From Vitrella brassicaformis CCMP3155 (taxonomy: Eukaryota > Protista > Chromerida), in the NCBI GenBank assembly GCA_001179505.1, contig CDMY01000526.1:1-57443 (forward strand): a stretch of DNA of 57,443 nt, written 5' to 3'. The translations under genes and the position numbers were made by a program. Each line of letters opens with the position of its first letter. Position 1 is the first letter of the stretch. The notes beneath the pieces were generated by a model. The model was not told the origin of the DNA. It made no database searches and was given only the letters and a program-made list of their open reading frames with translations. This document shows, piece by piece, positions 34,654 through 39,677 of this stretch.

Positions 34654-35207
34654 AGTTAGCCCAAATGCAGGCAGATTCGGCTCGGCATGCATTGCATGCG
34701 CACAAGTGGTGTCCATGGCTGTCTGAAGTGTCTGTCAGCAGAATGTGTGCTCGACGTTGATTGGTGTACAGTACTGCGTTGCTGGATGTGCATACAATCG
34801 CAAGGGATGGCGGACTCAACTATGTGATTTTCAGATGTTTTCGTTCAACAGCTGGCATGAGAGAGGCTCGTCCGCACACGCACATATGCCCACCTAAACG
34901 CAGCCTCTTGCGCGTGCATTGGTGCAGCAATATGTGCCTCACCCAGTCTGGGATGAGAGAGGTCCTGACCCTCTGCGACTACGCATCGCGTCCTCTCTTG
35001 TCCGCCTGTCTGTCTGTCTCCGTGCTGACCGACGGCGAGGTATGCACCGATACAGCCCTGACGACGAGTCGATTGCCCGGCCGTCGTTGGTGTGCAGATG
35101 CATACGTAAGAGGTCTATGGACATCCCGAAAATGAAAATCAGCCAAAGTCAATACATCGCCCCAAACAATGTAATGTGAGTCGAGTCAAACTGAGCTACA
35201 TGGTCGG

Positions 35208-38200
35208 TCAGAAATAGCAGACAGTGATCTTCACATCGGTGTCCTTGAAGATGTCTTTGATCATGCTGCTCACTGTCGGCCAATCCAGCTTATCGAGGCC
35301 GCAACCGATTTTGGGCATGCCCAACGCCCTCACCTGCACAACACTCGCAGACACCCATGGATCGACGCAACCATTTGGATCGATTTGTGTGCCTCCGCCC
35401 AGTGCATTGATCTGTCCGTCTATGCGCACATACGTTCTTGGAAACCACGTGTGCGAGCAGGTCACAGAGTGATGTCTCGAGGTCGTGGTAGGTGGGCTTC
35501 TCCCAATATTTGGCCTTACCATGCATAGTCTCTTCCCATCCATAGTGTCCTTCCTCCCTCCCTTCGTACCTTCGTGATGAGGTTATACAGGAAGGGCGGA
35601 CCTGCATTGCAATGCACGATGCACTCATTATCGTGTGTGCGCATGCCTGTCAGCCATGCCTGCCCACCGCTGTCGCCATCGTTTCTCGGAACGGCTATCG
35701 CCTTGCCCACCGACGGGTGCTGGTTCGCAACCTCACGCTGGATCGACTGTACACACAACAGCACACTTGCATGTCCATCATGTGTACTTCTGTTCAGAGG
35801 CAGACGCACCGGTTTGATCTTGGCGAAGTGCTGACAGATGCCCTTTGAGAAATTGTCGTTGACAGCGACGCAGTGAACTGACAGATATGATACCACAAAA
35901 TGCAGACCCACGTTCCGATGCGTGTGGACACTTTCGTTTCGTCTCACCGAGGGAATAGGTCTTGTCCAGAAGCTTGAACATGTCACCCTTTCTCTCCTCA
36001 TAGGAAAAGGCGGGCCCAGATGGCGAGGGCGTGCCCATGGGCTGCACCATGGTGCAGAGGTCGGTACGTTTTCTTTTGTGTGGGTGCATCGGTGTCCCTT
36101 ACCCGAGGTGCATCGATGCTGCCCTGTTTCTTCTGCTTGACCTTGGGCTCATCGCCGCTACCCTGACCACACCCATCCATGTATGTCCCCGCAGGTGGCT
36201 GTGTGTGCATTCCCACCTTGTTGGCCTGTTGGTCGACCTTCCATCGCCTCTTGCGCTGGCTCCCAGCCCCACCATCGCCTCCTGTGTCCTCGTCGTTGCC
36301 ACCTGTGTTGTGGATACATGTCACGGACGTACATGTGCCAGAGGGGAGTGTCCGCGTCGCATGCGTACCTCCGCCCCCCTCGCCACCCTGCCCGTCGGTC
36401 ATTTCGACGTCGTCATCCGCAGCACTTGCAGCGGAGACGTCGCCCTTCACGCACACAGTGATGCGCAGAGACAGGGATCCGAGAACTGCACAGAGAAGAG
36501 GGTTTGTGATGCCCACGAACAGCTTTCGACAGGTGAATGAATGCGTAGGTGTACCTTCTCGTATCATCTGTTTGACTTTCGGCCACTCTAGCTTGTCGAG
36601 TCCGCAGCCAATCAGCGGGAGACCTGCACAGCACAAAGACCCGCAGCCAGCTAGCCATGCATCACGTCCACGCCCCGCCCGCCACACATCCTTACCTAGT
36701 TTCTTGGTGTCATGCTGTATGAGGAGTCGCTTCAGGCTGACGAGTGAGTCCTTCAGTGTGTCGTACCTGACACATGTGTCCCGCTTTGCCATGTGCGCAG
36801 CTATACATGCAAGGCCCTCTTCTCTCTCCTGTCCTACGTCGGTTTTCCATGGTATTTCTCCTTGGTCACGAGATAATAGAGGAAGCGACCTGCATTGCAT
36901 TGCGTCCACCCAATACGTCCATCGGGTACAGGTGTGGATGCCCATGCGTTACCTTGATGGTGCAGCACAGCCACATCCCCCACACCCACGTCCTGACTCT
37001 TGAGCTCTTCCACACCCTGACCAAAAGGAGAGAGAAGCCAAGAACGTTGAAATGGGGTGGGTCCTCCTGGTGCATCGCTTACCCCGAACCGCTCTTTGAA
37101 CGTCTTGGCGATACCCTTCCCCATCTGCAGATCACGACTGACGCAATGGCCTGCCCGAAACCAATCCAAAGCCACGCAAGTAGGGCTGTCCGGCTATCCT
37201 TGATTCGTGTTGTTGTACCCAGTGCATATGTGGAATCCAGCTTGAAGAGGTCCCTTTGCACCTCCTCCAACACGAAGTCGTGGCCCGTGCCAGTCGCTGC
37301 ACACACAGAGTATATGCACACCCATTGCTCAATACCGAGCCCACGCGCAGGAATATCTGCGTGTACTCACCAGCAGCCGACTTGCCTTGAGGGCGGTAGG
37401 AAGGCGGAGAGGGAGCCTGCAACCATCCGCCAAAAAAGGGAGGAACTTTGTCCTTTGTTGGTGTCCATACATACCTTCTTGTCGTCCTTGCTGCTCTCGC
37501 CGTTTTCCTTCTGCTCACTCTGCCCAGCTGCTTTGTCTTCGCTAGCCTGCGTGCACGCACACATACTTACACTCCAGCAGACCAGACACAAGGGAGCCAG
37601 CGCATGAAACCTGTCGGTTCGTTGGCATCCCTGCTGCTGCTGCTGCGGCTTGCCCTTCCCCTGCACCGTCCCTGAGGGCGCTGCGGACCTCCATGAGCAG
37701 CACACCCAGCCTTGAGAAACGACGCATCAAAGCATACAGGTGAGTAGAAGCACCGGCAATCCTTCGATCTCTCGTCCTGGCTCACTTGTTCTCCCCTTGT
37801 CCGTTGCACACGCCCCAAAACCTGCAGATATGTGGCACCACGAAGCGATCCACCTTCTTACTTGGCACACACTCTCCTACGGCATGATGTCCGTATTGCG
37901 CTCTTACTTGTCATTCCACGTGTTGCCCTCCTCAAGATGACGGTCTCCAGTGGCCACCAGTCTGTCCGTCAGCTCCTTGTCAGATGTGAACTTGGCCATC
38001 AGAAGTTGTTTCATGATGTCGACGCGGGCCCTGAGTTTTGAGTACAACGAAAGCCACACCATCACCATCCCACATGGCCTGCTCATATGCAAATGTCAAC
38101 ATCGTGTTGGCTAGCTGGGCGTACGTTCCCCAGTCAGGTCTGAGCTGGACTTTCCTGGATAGAACGCATCCATACAAAGGAAGGGTGCATGGTCTTGGTC

Positions 38201-38704
38201 GTCACCCGTCATGACGTCGATTGCGTACTTGCCGGCGCGCTTCGCTTCTCTTGGTTCTTTGATGGACGCGATGTGTTCCCGGTCCTGCAGCCACAGGTCG
38301 AACGATGAGTGATCGCAGACAATGGGGGGACACGCAGGGTGTCCTGAATTACCTTACCCCCTCGTCCATGCTCTTGGCCGCCTGAAACGCACTGAGAGCC
38401 AACATCCGTATGAGCATCGGCCACGCATGGTGAGATCTCCGTATCTTACTGCTCTACGGATGGGTAGGTACGTTCTTCGAAGGTGACGGAACCTGCGAGA
38501 GGCAAGAGGAGAGGTCAGAGAATATCCCATCCATCCATTGGCTCCCCCACGTCACTTACATGGGTAGAAGTTCGATAGGTAGTCATGCAGACCTGCGTGC
38601 GGAAACACCGATAGAATCGCCTACTATAGATGCAAATGCCATCCTGTCGTCTGACCTTTGAAGCGTTTGATAGGTCCCGTTTCATCGCTCTCTTCTGTCG
38701 ACAT
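35208..38704 (-). CDS. NADAR (YbiA-family) + two tandem TARG1/DarG-type (Macro_Poa1p-like) macrodomains; predicted ADP-ribose hydrolase fusion, about 24 exons
   Basis: NADAR (about 37668-38704): MSTEESDETGPIKRFKG|LHDYLSNFYP|CSVTFEERTYPSVEH|AFQAAK...EPREAKRAGK|KVQLRPDWGT|ARVDIMKQLLMAKF...RLVATGDRHLEEGNTWNDK|FWGVCNGQGENK|LGVLLMEVRSAL. Macro 1 (about 36443-37283): RDLF...HCVSRDLQMGKGIAKTFKERFG...YYLVTKEKYHGKPTYDTL...LPLIGCGLDKLEW. Macro 2 (35208 to about 36008): KGDMF...HCVAVNDNFSKGIC...YNLITK|AKYWEKPTY...MPKIGCGLDKLDWPTVSSMIKDIF...ITVCYF*. The splice joins I checked within the domains are phase-consistent. Confidence 0.88.
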
Positions 38705-38890
38705 TGCGGACGGTGCGATGGCTTCTGACGCTTCTTGTGTTTGTCGAGACTCTCTGTGTGTGTGTCGCACAGATTCTTTCGGCCGTTGCCTTCGTGTTGG
38801 ACTCGTAGATCAGGTGTTTGGTCGCGCACGGATTGTTTTTAGGACATCTGCTCTAGCACTGCGCATTGACGGATTCCATTGCGAAGAAAG

Positions 38891-39677
38891 ATGGCATCAG
38901 GCACTCTCTCAGCTCCTGCCCCTCCCTTCGTGATGGGCGTTCCGTCTGCCGCGTGCAGTCGTGCGGATGAGGTCGGCACTGGCACCACCATCCTTGCAGT
39001 GAGCTACAAGGGCGGCGTTGTCCTGGCAGCGGACACGCGCACGTCGGCTGGAGCGTATGTGGTCAACCGAGCGTCCAGGAAGATATCCAAGGTAGGCAGA
39101 GGAATCAGACAGAATGCCGAGGAGCTTGGCAGAACGGCATCATATGTTTCGGTGGTTTTGTGTGTGGTTGCGTCTCGTCTTCCCTCAGGTGCACGACAAG
39201 ATCTACGTCTGTCGTTCGGGCAGTGCGGCCGACACGCAGGCCCTGACGCAGTTCGTCAAGTACTACCTGAACATCCACTCACTGGAGCTGGGCGAGCTGC
39301 CGAGTGTCAACACGGCGGCCACCCTGTTCCAGTCATTCCACTACGACTACAAGGACATGCTCATGTCGGGCCTCATCGTGGCGGGGTGGGACGGCAAGCG
39401 TGGCGGCCAGATATACTCGCTGCCCATCGGCGGGAGCAAGATCAAGGTCAACGTGACGGCTGGCGGGAGCGGGTCCGTGTACATCTCGGGCCTCATCGAC
39501 GCCCTCTACAAGGAGGACATGACCAAGGAGGAGGCCCAGCAGCTGGCCCTCAAGCTCCTCAGCCACGCCATGGCCAGGGACGCCAGCTCGGGCGGCATGG
39601 TGCGCATGACCACCATATCCGAAGACGGCGTCGAGGAGACCACGTTCGAGGGCGACAAGCTCCCGACACCAGCGTGA
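38891..39677 (+). CDS. PSMB6: 20S proteasome subunit beta-1 (beta type-6), 2 exons (38891-39091, 39189-39677)
   Basis: A propeptide followed by G|TTILAVSYKGGVVLAADTRTSAGAYVVNRASRKISK|VHDKIYVCRSGSAADTQ...GGSGSVYI...AMARDASSGG. The catalytic Thr1 and conserved Lys are present, and codon usage is strongly GC3-biased. Confidence 0.97.

Follow-up and report, generated by a model that had tools for sequence, protein, structure and literature searches.

Vitrella brassicaformis is an alga-like alveolate, and the window analysed here is a 57,443-nucleotide stretch of DNA from V. brassicaformis CCMP3155. On the minus strand, positions 38704 to 35208 hold a gene for a protein of 588 amino acids in which a NADAR domain is followed by two macrodomains. 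In the exon model, the coding region is divided among 26 exons of just 10 to 41 codons each, separated by 25 introns of 54 to 100 nt, all with GT-AG boundaries. The 1767 nt of coding sequence comprise 588 codons and a TGA stop codon at 35208-35210, and the interval 35208-38704 proposed in an earlier sequence-only reading runs exactly from stop to start. Every motif quoted in that reading is present in the one open, spliced minus-strand frame. Besides the exon model, the structure is given by spliced contigs and by identity of the translation to the public protein P0186 (CEM20372.1 / A0A0G4FY59), which is deposited as uncharacterised. The genome annotation and MMETSP Transcript_11169 both yield this same 588-residue protein.

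Because the exons are so short, the gene is easily missed by profile searches. Pfam, when applied to stop-free multi-exon stretches of the window, gave a weak match to NADAR and none to Macro, and six-frame scans of the whole genome with PF08719 and PF01661 missed the gene entirely, so that negatives from those scans are weak. P0186 was instead found by a search with a 119-residue read-through stretch of macrodomain 1, and later comparisons used P0186 and its shorter counterpart, P0001.

Contigs that cross the gene without introns occur in four public runs, from at most three studies. The missing introns imply cDNA, the RNA origin of the runs being otherwise a guess. A contig from run X8 (record 10) extends from 38760 to 35150, covers all exons and lacks all 25 introns; its span, 1881 nt, is exactly the spliced length of the model between those positions. 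Spliced contigs from X1 (record 3) and X7 (record 9) run from 38760 to 35948. A minor transcript form keeps intron 24 (35515..35569, minus strand), as seen by comparison of P0001 with P0186 and by unspliced 111-nt contigs in X1 and X7 that cover the intron (35488-35598). The retaining form, P0001, is 537 residues long, and its macrodomain 2 stops just past Lys520, without Asp561.

The deciding point between one gene and two is intron 9 (37547-37610, minus strand), a 64-nt, phase 0 intron with a CAG acceptor, the removal of which joins the last NADAR exon to a linker exon. Two neighbouring genes, one for NADAR and one for the paired macrodomains, might have been merged by an artefact of annotation or assembly, given that the donor of this intron is weak (GTTTCA) and that two contigs, in X7 and X8, stop short at 37415 and 37648. 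These two contig ends were rejected as separate transcripts: both run into locus C421 at 18-nt words that it shares with this gene, and are chimeras. Against the two-gene arrangement, contigs of each of the four runs carry the 37546/37611 joint in frame, and the MMETSP transcript is an independent assembly with the same ORF. A second gene would also lack a sensible start codon, since exons 10 and 11, in linker 1, contain no ATG, and the next in-frame methionine after Met163 is Met243, already inside macrodomain 1. A merger of two genes is therefore highly improbable, and it is confirmed that NADAR and the two macrodomains form a single expressed nuclear gene with one ORF, as had been proposed from the DNA alone.

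The NADAR domain occupies residues 19-148, encoded by exons 2-9 (37671..38587, minus strand). It matches Pfam PF08719 with 97.0 bits against a cut-off of 35.1, across profile positions 10-163 of 163, and carries the motifs LSNFYP (22-27), SVEHAFQAAK (39-48), LRPDW (76-80), WNDKFWG (120-126) and GENKLGVLLMEVR (132-144). Among solved structures, the best sequence match is YbiA (2b3w, 1e-20), followed by a NADAR entry, 8bau (4e-14). The Phytophthora nicotianae NADAR, for which the reference residues include E43, K50, E125, D130 and W133, offers eleven ADP-ribose-contacting positions for comparison. Nine are identical in Vitrella (Glu41, Lys48, Lys68, Asp79, Trp80, Arg84, Glu116, Asp122 and Trp125), one is changed conservatively (R79 to K72) and one differs, with Tyr84, which stacks on adenine, replaced by Arg77. 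The key codons lie at 38452-38454 (E41), 38373-38375 (K48), 37928-37930 (E116) and 37910-37912 (D122) on the minus strand. The active site is intact. The last strand has a YbiA-type glutamate, Glu116, and not the DarG1-type aspartate, which places the domain with the YbiA/NADAR classes.

Macrodomain 1 (residues 213-355, exons 12-18; 36445..37282, minus strand) aligns without gaps to human TARG1 across 134 residues, with a phmmer E-value of 6.5e-37. Macrodomain 2 (residues 439-588, exons 21-26; 35211..36014, minus strand) is a more divergent copy, with an E-value of 8.5e-27. DarG is the next macrodomain class, at 4e-6 and 5e-7 for the two copies. The earlier description of both domains as TARG1/DarG-type thus holds in its first half only: on these scores, both are of the TARG1 type and not the DarG type, the DarG matches being at about 1e-6, with no DarT-binding domain detected by Pfam in the 588-residue protein and no match to DarT found in the genome. 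The search for DarT-like transferases, which had been suggested as a check, is a weak negative, as control genomes were also silent and the exons are short.

The TK lysine and IGCGLD aspartate are kept in both macrodomains, as had been claimed, within LVTK (284-287), LITK (517-520) and IGCGLD (323-328 and 556-561). They correspond to the catalytic Lys84/Asp125 dyad of TARG1 (PMC9411070) and are Lys287 (codon 36861-36863) with Asp328 (36595-36597) in the first copy and Lys520 (35570-35572) with Asp561 (35292-35294) in the second, all on the minus strand. The dyad positions carry Lys in 99% and Asp in 94% of 177 family members. Pfam Macro matches two stretches of the protein with 36.3 bits against a cut-off of 22, which, like the NADAR score, is far beyond chance. 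The fold of macrodomain 1 is accepted because of its gap-free alignment with the solved TARG1 structure. For macrodomain 2, an AF2 model (pLDDT 93, pTM 0.87) was compared by Foldseek, and the top matches are all TARG1, with TM scores of 0.88-0.93; the top-ranked one has a TM score of 0.92 and an rmsd of about 2 Å.

The two copies differ in the pocket. The near-invariant residues of the HCxSxD...GxGIA motif are all kept in macrodomain 1, but macrodomain 2 has four changes adjoining the ligand pocket: Ser to Ala465, Asp to Asn467, Gly to Ser471 and Ala to Cys475, the last at a position where each of the 177 other family members has Ala. Ser35 of TARG1 may matter for O-acyl-ADP-ribose deacylation; a literature search on the role of this residue gave no usable result. 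With these substitutions, the second copy may act as a reader or differ in specificity. If only NADAR and macrodomain 1 were enzymes, macrodomain 2 could serve as a reader, binding ADP-ribose without catalysis and bringing the protein to modified targets, a possibility to which its long branch (1.15, versus a median of 0.39 in a 179-domain tree) and its score by itself of 18.7 bits, below the Pfam cut-off of 22, also point. It nevertheless has an intact macrodomain fold and retains both catalytic residues together with the TK and GCGLD motifs around them. In addition, the positions that correspond to the RNA-docking residues K50, R86 and R126 of TARG1 (bioRxiv 10.64898/2026.03.31.715305) are basic at three of three sites in copy 2 and at two of three in copy 1. 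We hold the reader role to be doubtful, but to be taken seriously.

Intron positions common to both macrodomains suggest an internal duplication. The 179-domain tree leaves the placement of the two copies without resolution, and an AU test does not reject them as sisters, a result that, with a poor free tree search, is compatible with duplication. The present architecture appears to have arisen by such a duplication and by addition of NADAR at the N-terminus. The domains are separated by long linkers that are predicted to be disordered, and the Atlas model of the protein has a pTM of 0.34. Linker 1 (residues 149-212; 37283..37670, minus strand) is rich in Ala, Gly and charged residues. Linker 2 (residues 356-438; 36015..36444, minus strand) is acidic and Gly-rich, followed by a basic, bipartite stretch (R397-K421, about 36127-36255, minus strand) that, as judged from sequence only, is a putative NLS.

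According to work from 2021-2026, ADP-ribosylation of bases in DNA and RNA can be undone, and the chemistry is divided between two unrelated classes of hydrolase: TARG1-like macrodomains cleave links to ring nitrogens, and NADARs cleave links to exocyclic amines. TARG1 removes T-ADPr (PMC8501950) and U-N3-ADPr (PMC13036486), and acts on G-N1-ADPr but not G-N2-ADPr, whereas NADAR does the reverse (bioRxiv 10.64898/2026.03.31.715305). C-ADPr is also removed by NADAR and YbiA-type enzymes (PMC12945103). The complementary specificities that the sequence-only reading had set out are thus supported by the literature. The same papers pose as questions the role of eukaryotic NADARs and whether endogenous G-N2 or C marks exist in eukaryotes.

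In light of this chemistry, we favor, with a probability of roughly 55%, the reading that the Vitrella protein, a TARG1 orthologue extended by a NADAR, is a broad eraser that takes base-linked ADP-ribose off DNA or RNA. The gene is most likely the TARG1 orthologue of Vitrella, because no TARG1-like macrodomains other than its two copies were detected in the genome. The Lys/Asp dyads of the macrodomains would remove ADP-ribose from base ring nitrogens (T-N3 in DNA; U-N3 and G-N1 in RNA), and would likewise act on nucleic-acid phosphate ends and on protein Glu/Asp. Glu41, Lys48 and Glu116 of NADAR would break the N-glycosidic bond at exocyclic amines (G-N2 and C), which is beyond the reach of the macrodomains. 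Tethered in this way, one enzyme could clear every known reversible base-linked ADP-ribose mark. Given the literature of 2025-2026, RNA would be as likely a substrate as DNA. The marks may be written by the PARPs of Vitrella, whose genome holds several PARP loci as possible writers along with PARG loci, or by foreign toxins. The gene structure, the spliced expression, the identity of the domains and the conserved catalytic residues are shown by the data, whereas substrates, nuclear location and biological role are what we infer.

Several features count against a broad eraser: the replacement of the adenine-stacking tyrosine by Arg77, the pocket substitutions of macrodomain 2, and a genome search that gave no DarT as a candidate writer of G-N2 or C marks, although that negative is weak. 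In addition, E. coli YbiA, the solved NADAR that matches best, has an established role in breaking down intermediates of the riboflavin pathway and hydrolyses G-ADPr less well than the DarG1-type NADARs do. The YbiA match and the YbiA-type Glu116 would fit a protein de-MARylase combined with metabolite repair. The macrodomains would then serve PARP signalling, in the classical manner of TARG1, with Glu/Asp-linked and phosphate-end ADP-ribose and O-acetyl-ADP-ribose as substrates. NADAR, as a YbiA-like N-glycosidase, would destroy reactive intermediates of the riboflavin pathway or derivatives of free ADP-ribose, and the two would be fused for the sake of co-regulation or of their shared product, ADP-ribose, and not for nucleic-acid repair. 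The genome, rich in PARP and PARG loci, suggests that protein ADP-ribosylation is active, and the earliest characterisation of TARG1 was on protein and small-molecule substrates (PMC9411070). However, G-ADPr on both DNA and RNA is a substrate of all four NADAR families tested to date, YbiA among them, and the basic RNA-docking residues of TARG1 are largely kept. Among eukaryotic proteins, those most closely related to the macrodomains are, moreover, repeatedly fused to DNA-end-processing enzymes; their partners include DNA ligase/LIG3-BRCT, FHA-PNKP, XPG/FEN1, TatD DNase and a retroelement integrase. No riboflavin-pathway domain is fused to the protein or adjacent in the upstream flank, where the neighbour is a proteasome subunit gene. 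This combination of protein and metabolite repair seems to us rather unlikely.

The nearest relatives of the NADAR by sequence are phage and bacterial proteins fused to NAD-metabolism domains, and a role on soluble ADP-ribose-derived signals or by-products has been proposed for viral NADAR-Macro tandems (PMC9503650). By analogy, the Vitrella protein might scavenge cyclic or variant ADP-ribose, or the ADP-ribose-1''-phosphate from tRNA splicing, in immune signalling or RNA repair. Its macrodomains, though, belong to the TARG1 lineage of eukaryotes, with 45-53% identity to eukaryotic homologues, and the known substrates of that lineage are macromolecular, and the NLS-like linker and the DNA-repair fusion partners of its relatives point to nucleic acids, which makes a scavenger of soluble compounds improbable.

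A stronger form of the broad-eraser reading would have the nucleic acids of Vitrella routinely carry both ring-nitrogen (T/U-N3, G-N1) and exocyclic-amine (G-N2, C) marks, with the protein as a dedicated universal eraser. Such marks could be made by an expanded set of PARPs in Vitrella itself, as a regulated modification of DNA or RNA, or come from bacterial or viral toxins in the coral-reef habitat, and the macrodomain copies might divide the substrates between them, such as DNA and RNA, or pyrimidines and G-N1. We consider this form unlikely, but, if true, it would be the first natural eukaryotic evidence of two eraser classes in one pathway. An intact NADAR fused to the only TARG1-type domains of an organism is in itself a Rosetta-stone hint that both activities belong to one eukaryotic pathway. 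The protein represents no new enzyme class and is already in the databases; it is of use as a starting point for biochemistry and not as a discovery in its own right, being compact and testable, with three domains for which catalytic mutants are clear.

Among known systems, human TARG1/OARD1 (C6orf130; PDB 4J5Q/4J5R/4J5S) is the closest to the macrodomains, as both copies align with the whole domain and keep the HC..., TK and GCGLD motifs. TARG1, however, is a single domain of 152 residues, whereas the Vitrella protein has two tandem copies behind NADAR, and copy 2 departs from the HCxSxD...GxGIA motif at its conserved Ser, Asp and Ala. The NADAR shares ADP-ribose-contacting residues with the P. 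nicotianae enzyme (8BAU) and the last-strand Glu with the class of E. coli YbiA (2B3W), but most NADARs are free-standing (PMC11543638). The last-strand Asp that marks the DarT1-associated antitoxin NADARs (DarG1 / BC4488 class) is absent, and so is their N-terminal extension for DNA binding. DarG of DarTG2 (PDB 5M31, 5M3I, 7OMU) belongs to the same ALC1/TARG1-like macrodomain class, has the equivalent catalytic Lys and removes thymidine-linked ADP-ribose, as TARG1 does. It is without the Asp of the dyad, which both Vitrella copies have, and it carries a C-terminal DarT-binding domain and is encoded alongside DarT2, neither of which was found in Vitrella. The Vitrella protein is not a DarG.

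The fusion is real and is unusual for a eukaryote. Searches found no orthologue with the same three-domain layout in any other eukaryote, and conservation therefore cannot show selection for the fusion. Tandem or fused TARG1-like proteins of the same macrodomain lineage do occur, such as Rhodelphis marinus P0003, the FHA-Macro-PNKP protein of Soliformovum (P0157) and Macro-DNA ligase/BRCT proteins, with 42-53% identity for those compared, but none has a NADAR. The combination itself is not new, in keeping with the earlier remark that such associations are known in general. In the viral NADAR-Macro tandems (PMC9503650), NADAR precedes the macrodomain in one polypeptide, as in Vitrella. The phage protein P0253, a NADAR joined to a TARG1-type macrodomain with the TK Lys and IGCGLD, aligns to Vitrella residues 14-352 with 33% identity (E about 1e-47 to 1e-57). 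It has a single macrodomain and no long linkers, and is encoded on an intron-less phage contig, adjoining terminase genes, in contrast to the 25 introns in Vitrella. Identity to P0253 is 44% for the NADAR and 37% for the macrodomain, versus 56% and 53% to unfused relatives of each, and the Vitrella macrodomains are 45-53% identical to eukaryotic TARG1-like homologues. That each domain is closer to unfused relatives than to P0253 suggests that the two fusions arose independently. NADAR has been joined repeatedly and independently to three macrodomain classes in phages and bacteria, P0253 included, and this recurrence strengthens the link between the two activities in one pathway.

The gene joining a NADAR domain to two macrodomains is encoded on the minus strand (start codon ATG at 38704, stop codon TGA at 35208-35210) in 26 exons separated by 25 introns of 54-100 nt, which were placed by hand on reading that strand and are GT-AG in 25/25 cases. 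The CDS of 1767 nt specifies 588 codons, and all of the motifs quoted in the sequence-only reading lie in one spliced minus-strand frame of this model. Reading of the minus strand between the upstream stop (~38773) and 38704 finds no in-frame ATG, and the gene is single copy at the DNA level in the genome. A gene for a proteasome beta-type subunit (38879-39677, plus strand; Pfam Proteasome, 118 bits) is arranged head to head with it. Given that the first ATG of the proteasome gene (~38891) is only ~190 bp from that at 38704, the two genes probably share a bidirectional promoter.

Contigs of four sequencing runs, from at most three studies, were placed on 35150-38760. None of the runs containing the locus is recorded as RNA; four matched only ~30% of sampled words, as exon-only sequence would. 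Intron-less contigs cover the locus in all four. Record 10 of run X8 (2644 nt) passes through all exons from 38760 to 35150, a spliced distance of 1881 nt that matches the 26-exon model exactly, and record 3 of run X1 and record 9 of run X7 (~1670 nt) extend from 38760 to 35948. Every listed contig joint is bounded by CT..AC as read on the plus strand, or GT..AG on the minus. The intron at 37547-37610 (minus strand), with its weak donor GTTTCA, is removed in 4/4 runs by a joint at 37545->37610 (cut +1), which connects the last NADAR exon with the linker exon in phase 0. The NADAR and the macrodomains belong to a single transcript, and the continuous, in-frame junction supposed by the sequence-only reading is borne out. 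There is no ATG in exons 10 and 11, and the in-frame Met following Met163 is Met243, within macrodomain 1; a separate macrodomain gene would therefore have no sensible start. Two contigs, from runs X7 and X8, depart from the gene at 37415 and 37648, and their loose parts map to contig C421 of the Vitrella genome. Alternative transcripts were ruled out, given that the breaks fall on 18-nt words common to the gene and C421: the purine-rich word GGAAGGCGGAGAGGGAG and a CAG repeat, at 37398-37415 and 37631-37648 of the window and at 39226-39255 and 42814-42843 of C421 (L011). Therefore, these jumps are interpreted as chimeras that arose in assembly or by template switching.

An exhaustive protein search, with the stop-free stretch carrying exons 13-15 as query, recovered P0001, a 537-aa MMETSP ORF (Transcript_11170). 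Its 90% cluster includes the 588-aa P0186 (CEM20372.1, UniRef A0A0G4FY59; also MMETSP Transcript_11169), recorded as a "Macro domain-containing protein" of Vitrella brassicaformis CCMP3155 and identical at every letter to the translated model. The protein is already in public databases, uncharacterised, and the literature searched makes no mention of Vitrella with these domains. P0001 is the same as the model through residue 520 and then reads through intron 24 (35515-35569, minus strand, 55 nt), which is kept in a minor transcript form; its stop falls 17 codons past Lys520, and the Asp561 half of macrodomain 2 is missing. Unspliced 111-nt contigs spanning 35488-35598 are present in runs X1 and X7.

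Pfam places the NADAR domain at residues 19-148 of P0186 (97 bits; cut-off 35.1), and by sequence it matches the solved structures of E. coli YbiA (1e-20) and the 8BAU NADAR (4e-14). ADP-ribose-contacting residues were taken from the P. nicotianae NADAR structure (PMC11543638) and mapped through the alignment behind these matches. P. nicotianae E43, K50, K75, D86, W89, R93, E125, D130 and W133 correspond to Vitrella E41, K48, K68, D79, W80, R84, E116, D122 and W125, all identical; the changes are R79 to K72, which is conservative, and Y84 to R77. Judged from sequence, Glu116 places the domain in the Glu-bearing (YbiA/NADAR) classes, outside both the Asp-bearing class of DarT1 antitoxins and the His-bearing phage class. 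Its closest relatives are metagenomic NADARs, unfused or otherwise fused, with 50-56% identity, and the few with a source name are bacterial; its ESM Atlas neighbours are phage NADAR clusters. Two or three NADAR domains in tandem occur in P0138, P0251 and P0252, from JGI, ENA and Logan assemblies, and each P0138 repeat is ~45% identical to the Vitrella domain. The other NADAR locus of the genome (C219:80183-82133; L001:1005-2955) reads SATHAILAVRF for SVEHAFQAAK, so that the catalytic Glu and Lys are missing. FHA and RRM exons follow it on the same strand, and the product may be a non-catalytic NADAR-FHA-RRM protein.

The macrodomains had been described as TARG1/DarG-type, and only the first half of that label holds. 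Pfam reports Macro in two stretches of P0186 (36.3 bits; cut-off 22). Compared with human TARG1/OARD1, macrodomain 1 (205-356) scores E 6.5e-37 with zero gaps across 134 residues and macrodomain 2 (430-588) scores 8.5e-27, whereas DarG macrodomains match the two at 4e-6 to 5e-7. The TARG1 catalytic dyad, Lys84/Asp125 (PMC9411070), is retained as K287/D328 in macrodomain 1 (copy 1) and K520/D561 in macrodomain 2 (copy 2), as first noticed. Given that DarG has the Lys only, with no dyad Asp, both copies are classed by sequence as TARG1-type, not DarG-type. Copy 1 retains all near-invariant columns of a 179-domain family alignment. A main rival explanation, that macrodomain 2 is non-catalytic, is to be weighed with the substitutions in copy 2 (A465, N467, F470, S471 and C475 for family S, D, M, G and A) and with its intact dyad and retained H-C, G, T-K, P, G-C-G-L-D and W columns. 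AlphaFold2 modelling of copy 2 alone, from a 48-sequence alignment, gave a confident model (pLDDT 93, pTM 0.87), with best structural matches all to TARG1 (TM 0.88-0.93, rmsd 1.7-2.3 A, 39% identity) and DarG next (0.83-0.85).

The two copies are 41% identical and share two introns at matching alignment column and phase (Gly234/Val461, phase 1; after Gly256/Pro483, phase 0). A third pair (Gly278/Gly510, phase 1) adjoins an indel, and the other introns differ. The copies as sisters are not rejected by the AU test (p 0.885), the constrained tree being better than a short free search, and the end branch of copy 2 is 1.15 against a median of 0.39. These features fit internal duplication of an intron-bearing unit, after which copy 2 would have changed faster. 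Given that macrodomain 1, used as query against all six frames of the whole genome, matched this gene only, the gene is most simply taken as the Vitrella TARG1 orthologue. TARG1-like macrodomains of other eukaryotes, most of them from marine metatranscriptomes, have as fusion partners DNA ligase with LIG3-BRCT, FHA-PNKP (Soliformovum), XPG/FEN1, TatD DNase and retrotransposon integrase/RT (P0157, P0166, P0188-P0218, P0196, P0213, P0024, P0214-P0224). The lineage is tied to DNA-end processing and mobile elements, a broad, little-described association.

TARG1 clears DNA of thymidine-N3-ADPr and relieves DarT toxicity (PMC8501950); it likewise clears RNA of uracil-N3-ADPr, a mark that NADAR does not act on (PMC13036486). 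Guanine-N1-ADPr is a substrate of TARG1 and not of NADAR, and guanine-N2-ADPr of NADAR and not of TARG1 (bioRxiv 10.64898/2026.03.31.715305). Removal of G-ADPr from DNA and RNA is common to all NADAR families, and the NADAR and YbiA families are also active on cytidine-ADPr (PMC11833690; PMC12945103). Since these published specificities are non-overlapping, the tethered domains could clear every known reversible base-linked ADP-ribose. We infer, at a probability of roughly 0.55, that the protein is an eraser of nucleic-acid base ADP-ribose. The DNA eraser proposed earlier is reasonable and better grounded in recent literature, still by inference, but DNA and RNA are equally likely substrates. 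The main rival to base erasure is a role on a protein or small-molecule substrate. A nucleic-acid substrate is favoured by the ligase, PNKP, FEN1, TatD and retroelement integrase fusions of the closest eukaryotic macrodomain relatives and by the equivalents of TARG1 RNA-docking K50/R86/R126, which are basic at 2/3 positions in copy 1 (E253/K289/K329) and 3/3 in copy 2 (K480/K522/K562). A putative bipartite NLS-like basic stretch in linker 2 points the same way, and the N-terminus appears to lack a targeting peptide. PARP catalytic domains occur at at least seven loci in the genome. The PARG genes are strikingly expanded, with PF05028 matches at 23 exon-level places in ~10 loci (contigs C718, C298, C406, C238, C424 and C385), six of them on C718 (53-241 kb). 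Endogenous writers are therefore plausible. The suggested search for DarT-like transferases detected no DarT in the Vitrella genome, a weak negative given that control genomes were also silent and exons are short.

Neither a second protein with NADAR and two TARG1-like macrodomains nor a further eukaryotic NADAR-macrodomain fusion was found by word-indexed search of 5.8 billion proteins or by hmmsearch/phmmer on 250 fetched proteins. The three-domain architecture is therefore unusual for a eukaryote, although tandem NADAR and Macro domains are known in several viruses (PMC9503650). ESM Atlas Macro+NADAR clusters have 81 and 57 members; P0256 and P0335 join NADAR to a macrodomain of another class, and P0331 combines a DprA/SLOG domain with a NADAR and a DarG-like macrodomain. 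P0253 (287 aa; L012:4001-4864, Logan SRR30832627 contig) has NADAR then a TARG1-type macrodomain, collinear with Vitrella residues 14-352 at 33% identity. It lies near large and small terminase genes, and is therefore from a phage. As a candidate counter-defence, this one protein could act against DarTG1 and DarTG2 alike. The P0253 macrodomain is 37% identical to those of Vitrella, whereas eukaryotic TARG1-like domains are closer (45-53%), and the P0253 NADAR is 44% identical, whereas unfused NADARs reach 56%. Given that both Vitrella domains are closer to other relatives, the Vitrella fusion looks like an independent case of a recurrent combination.
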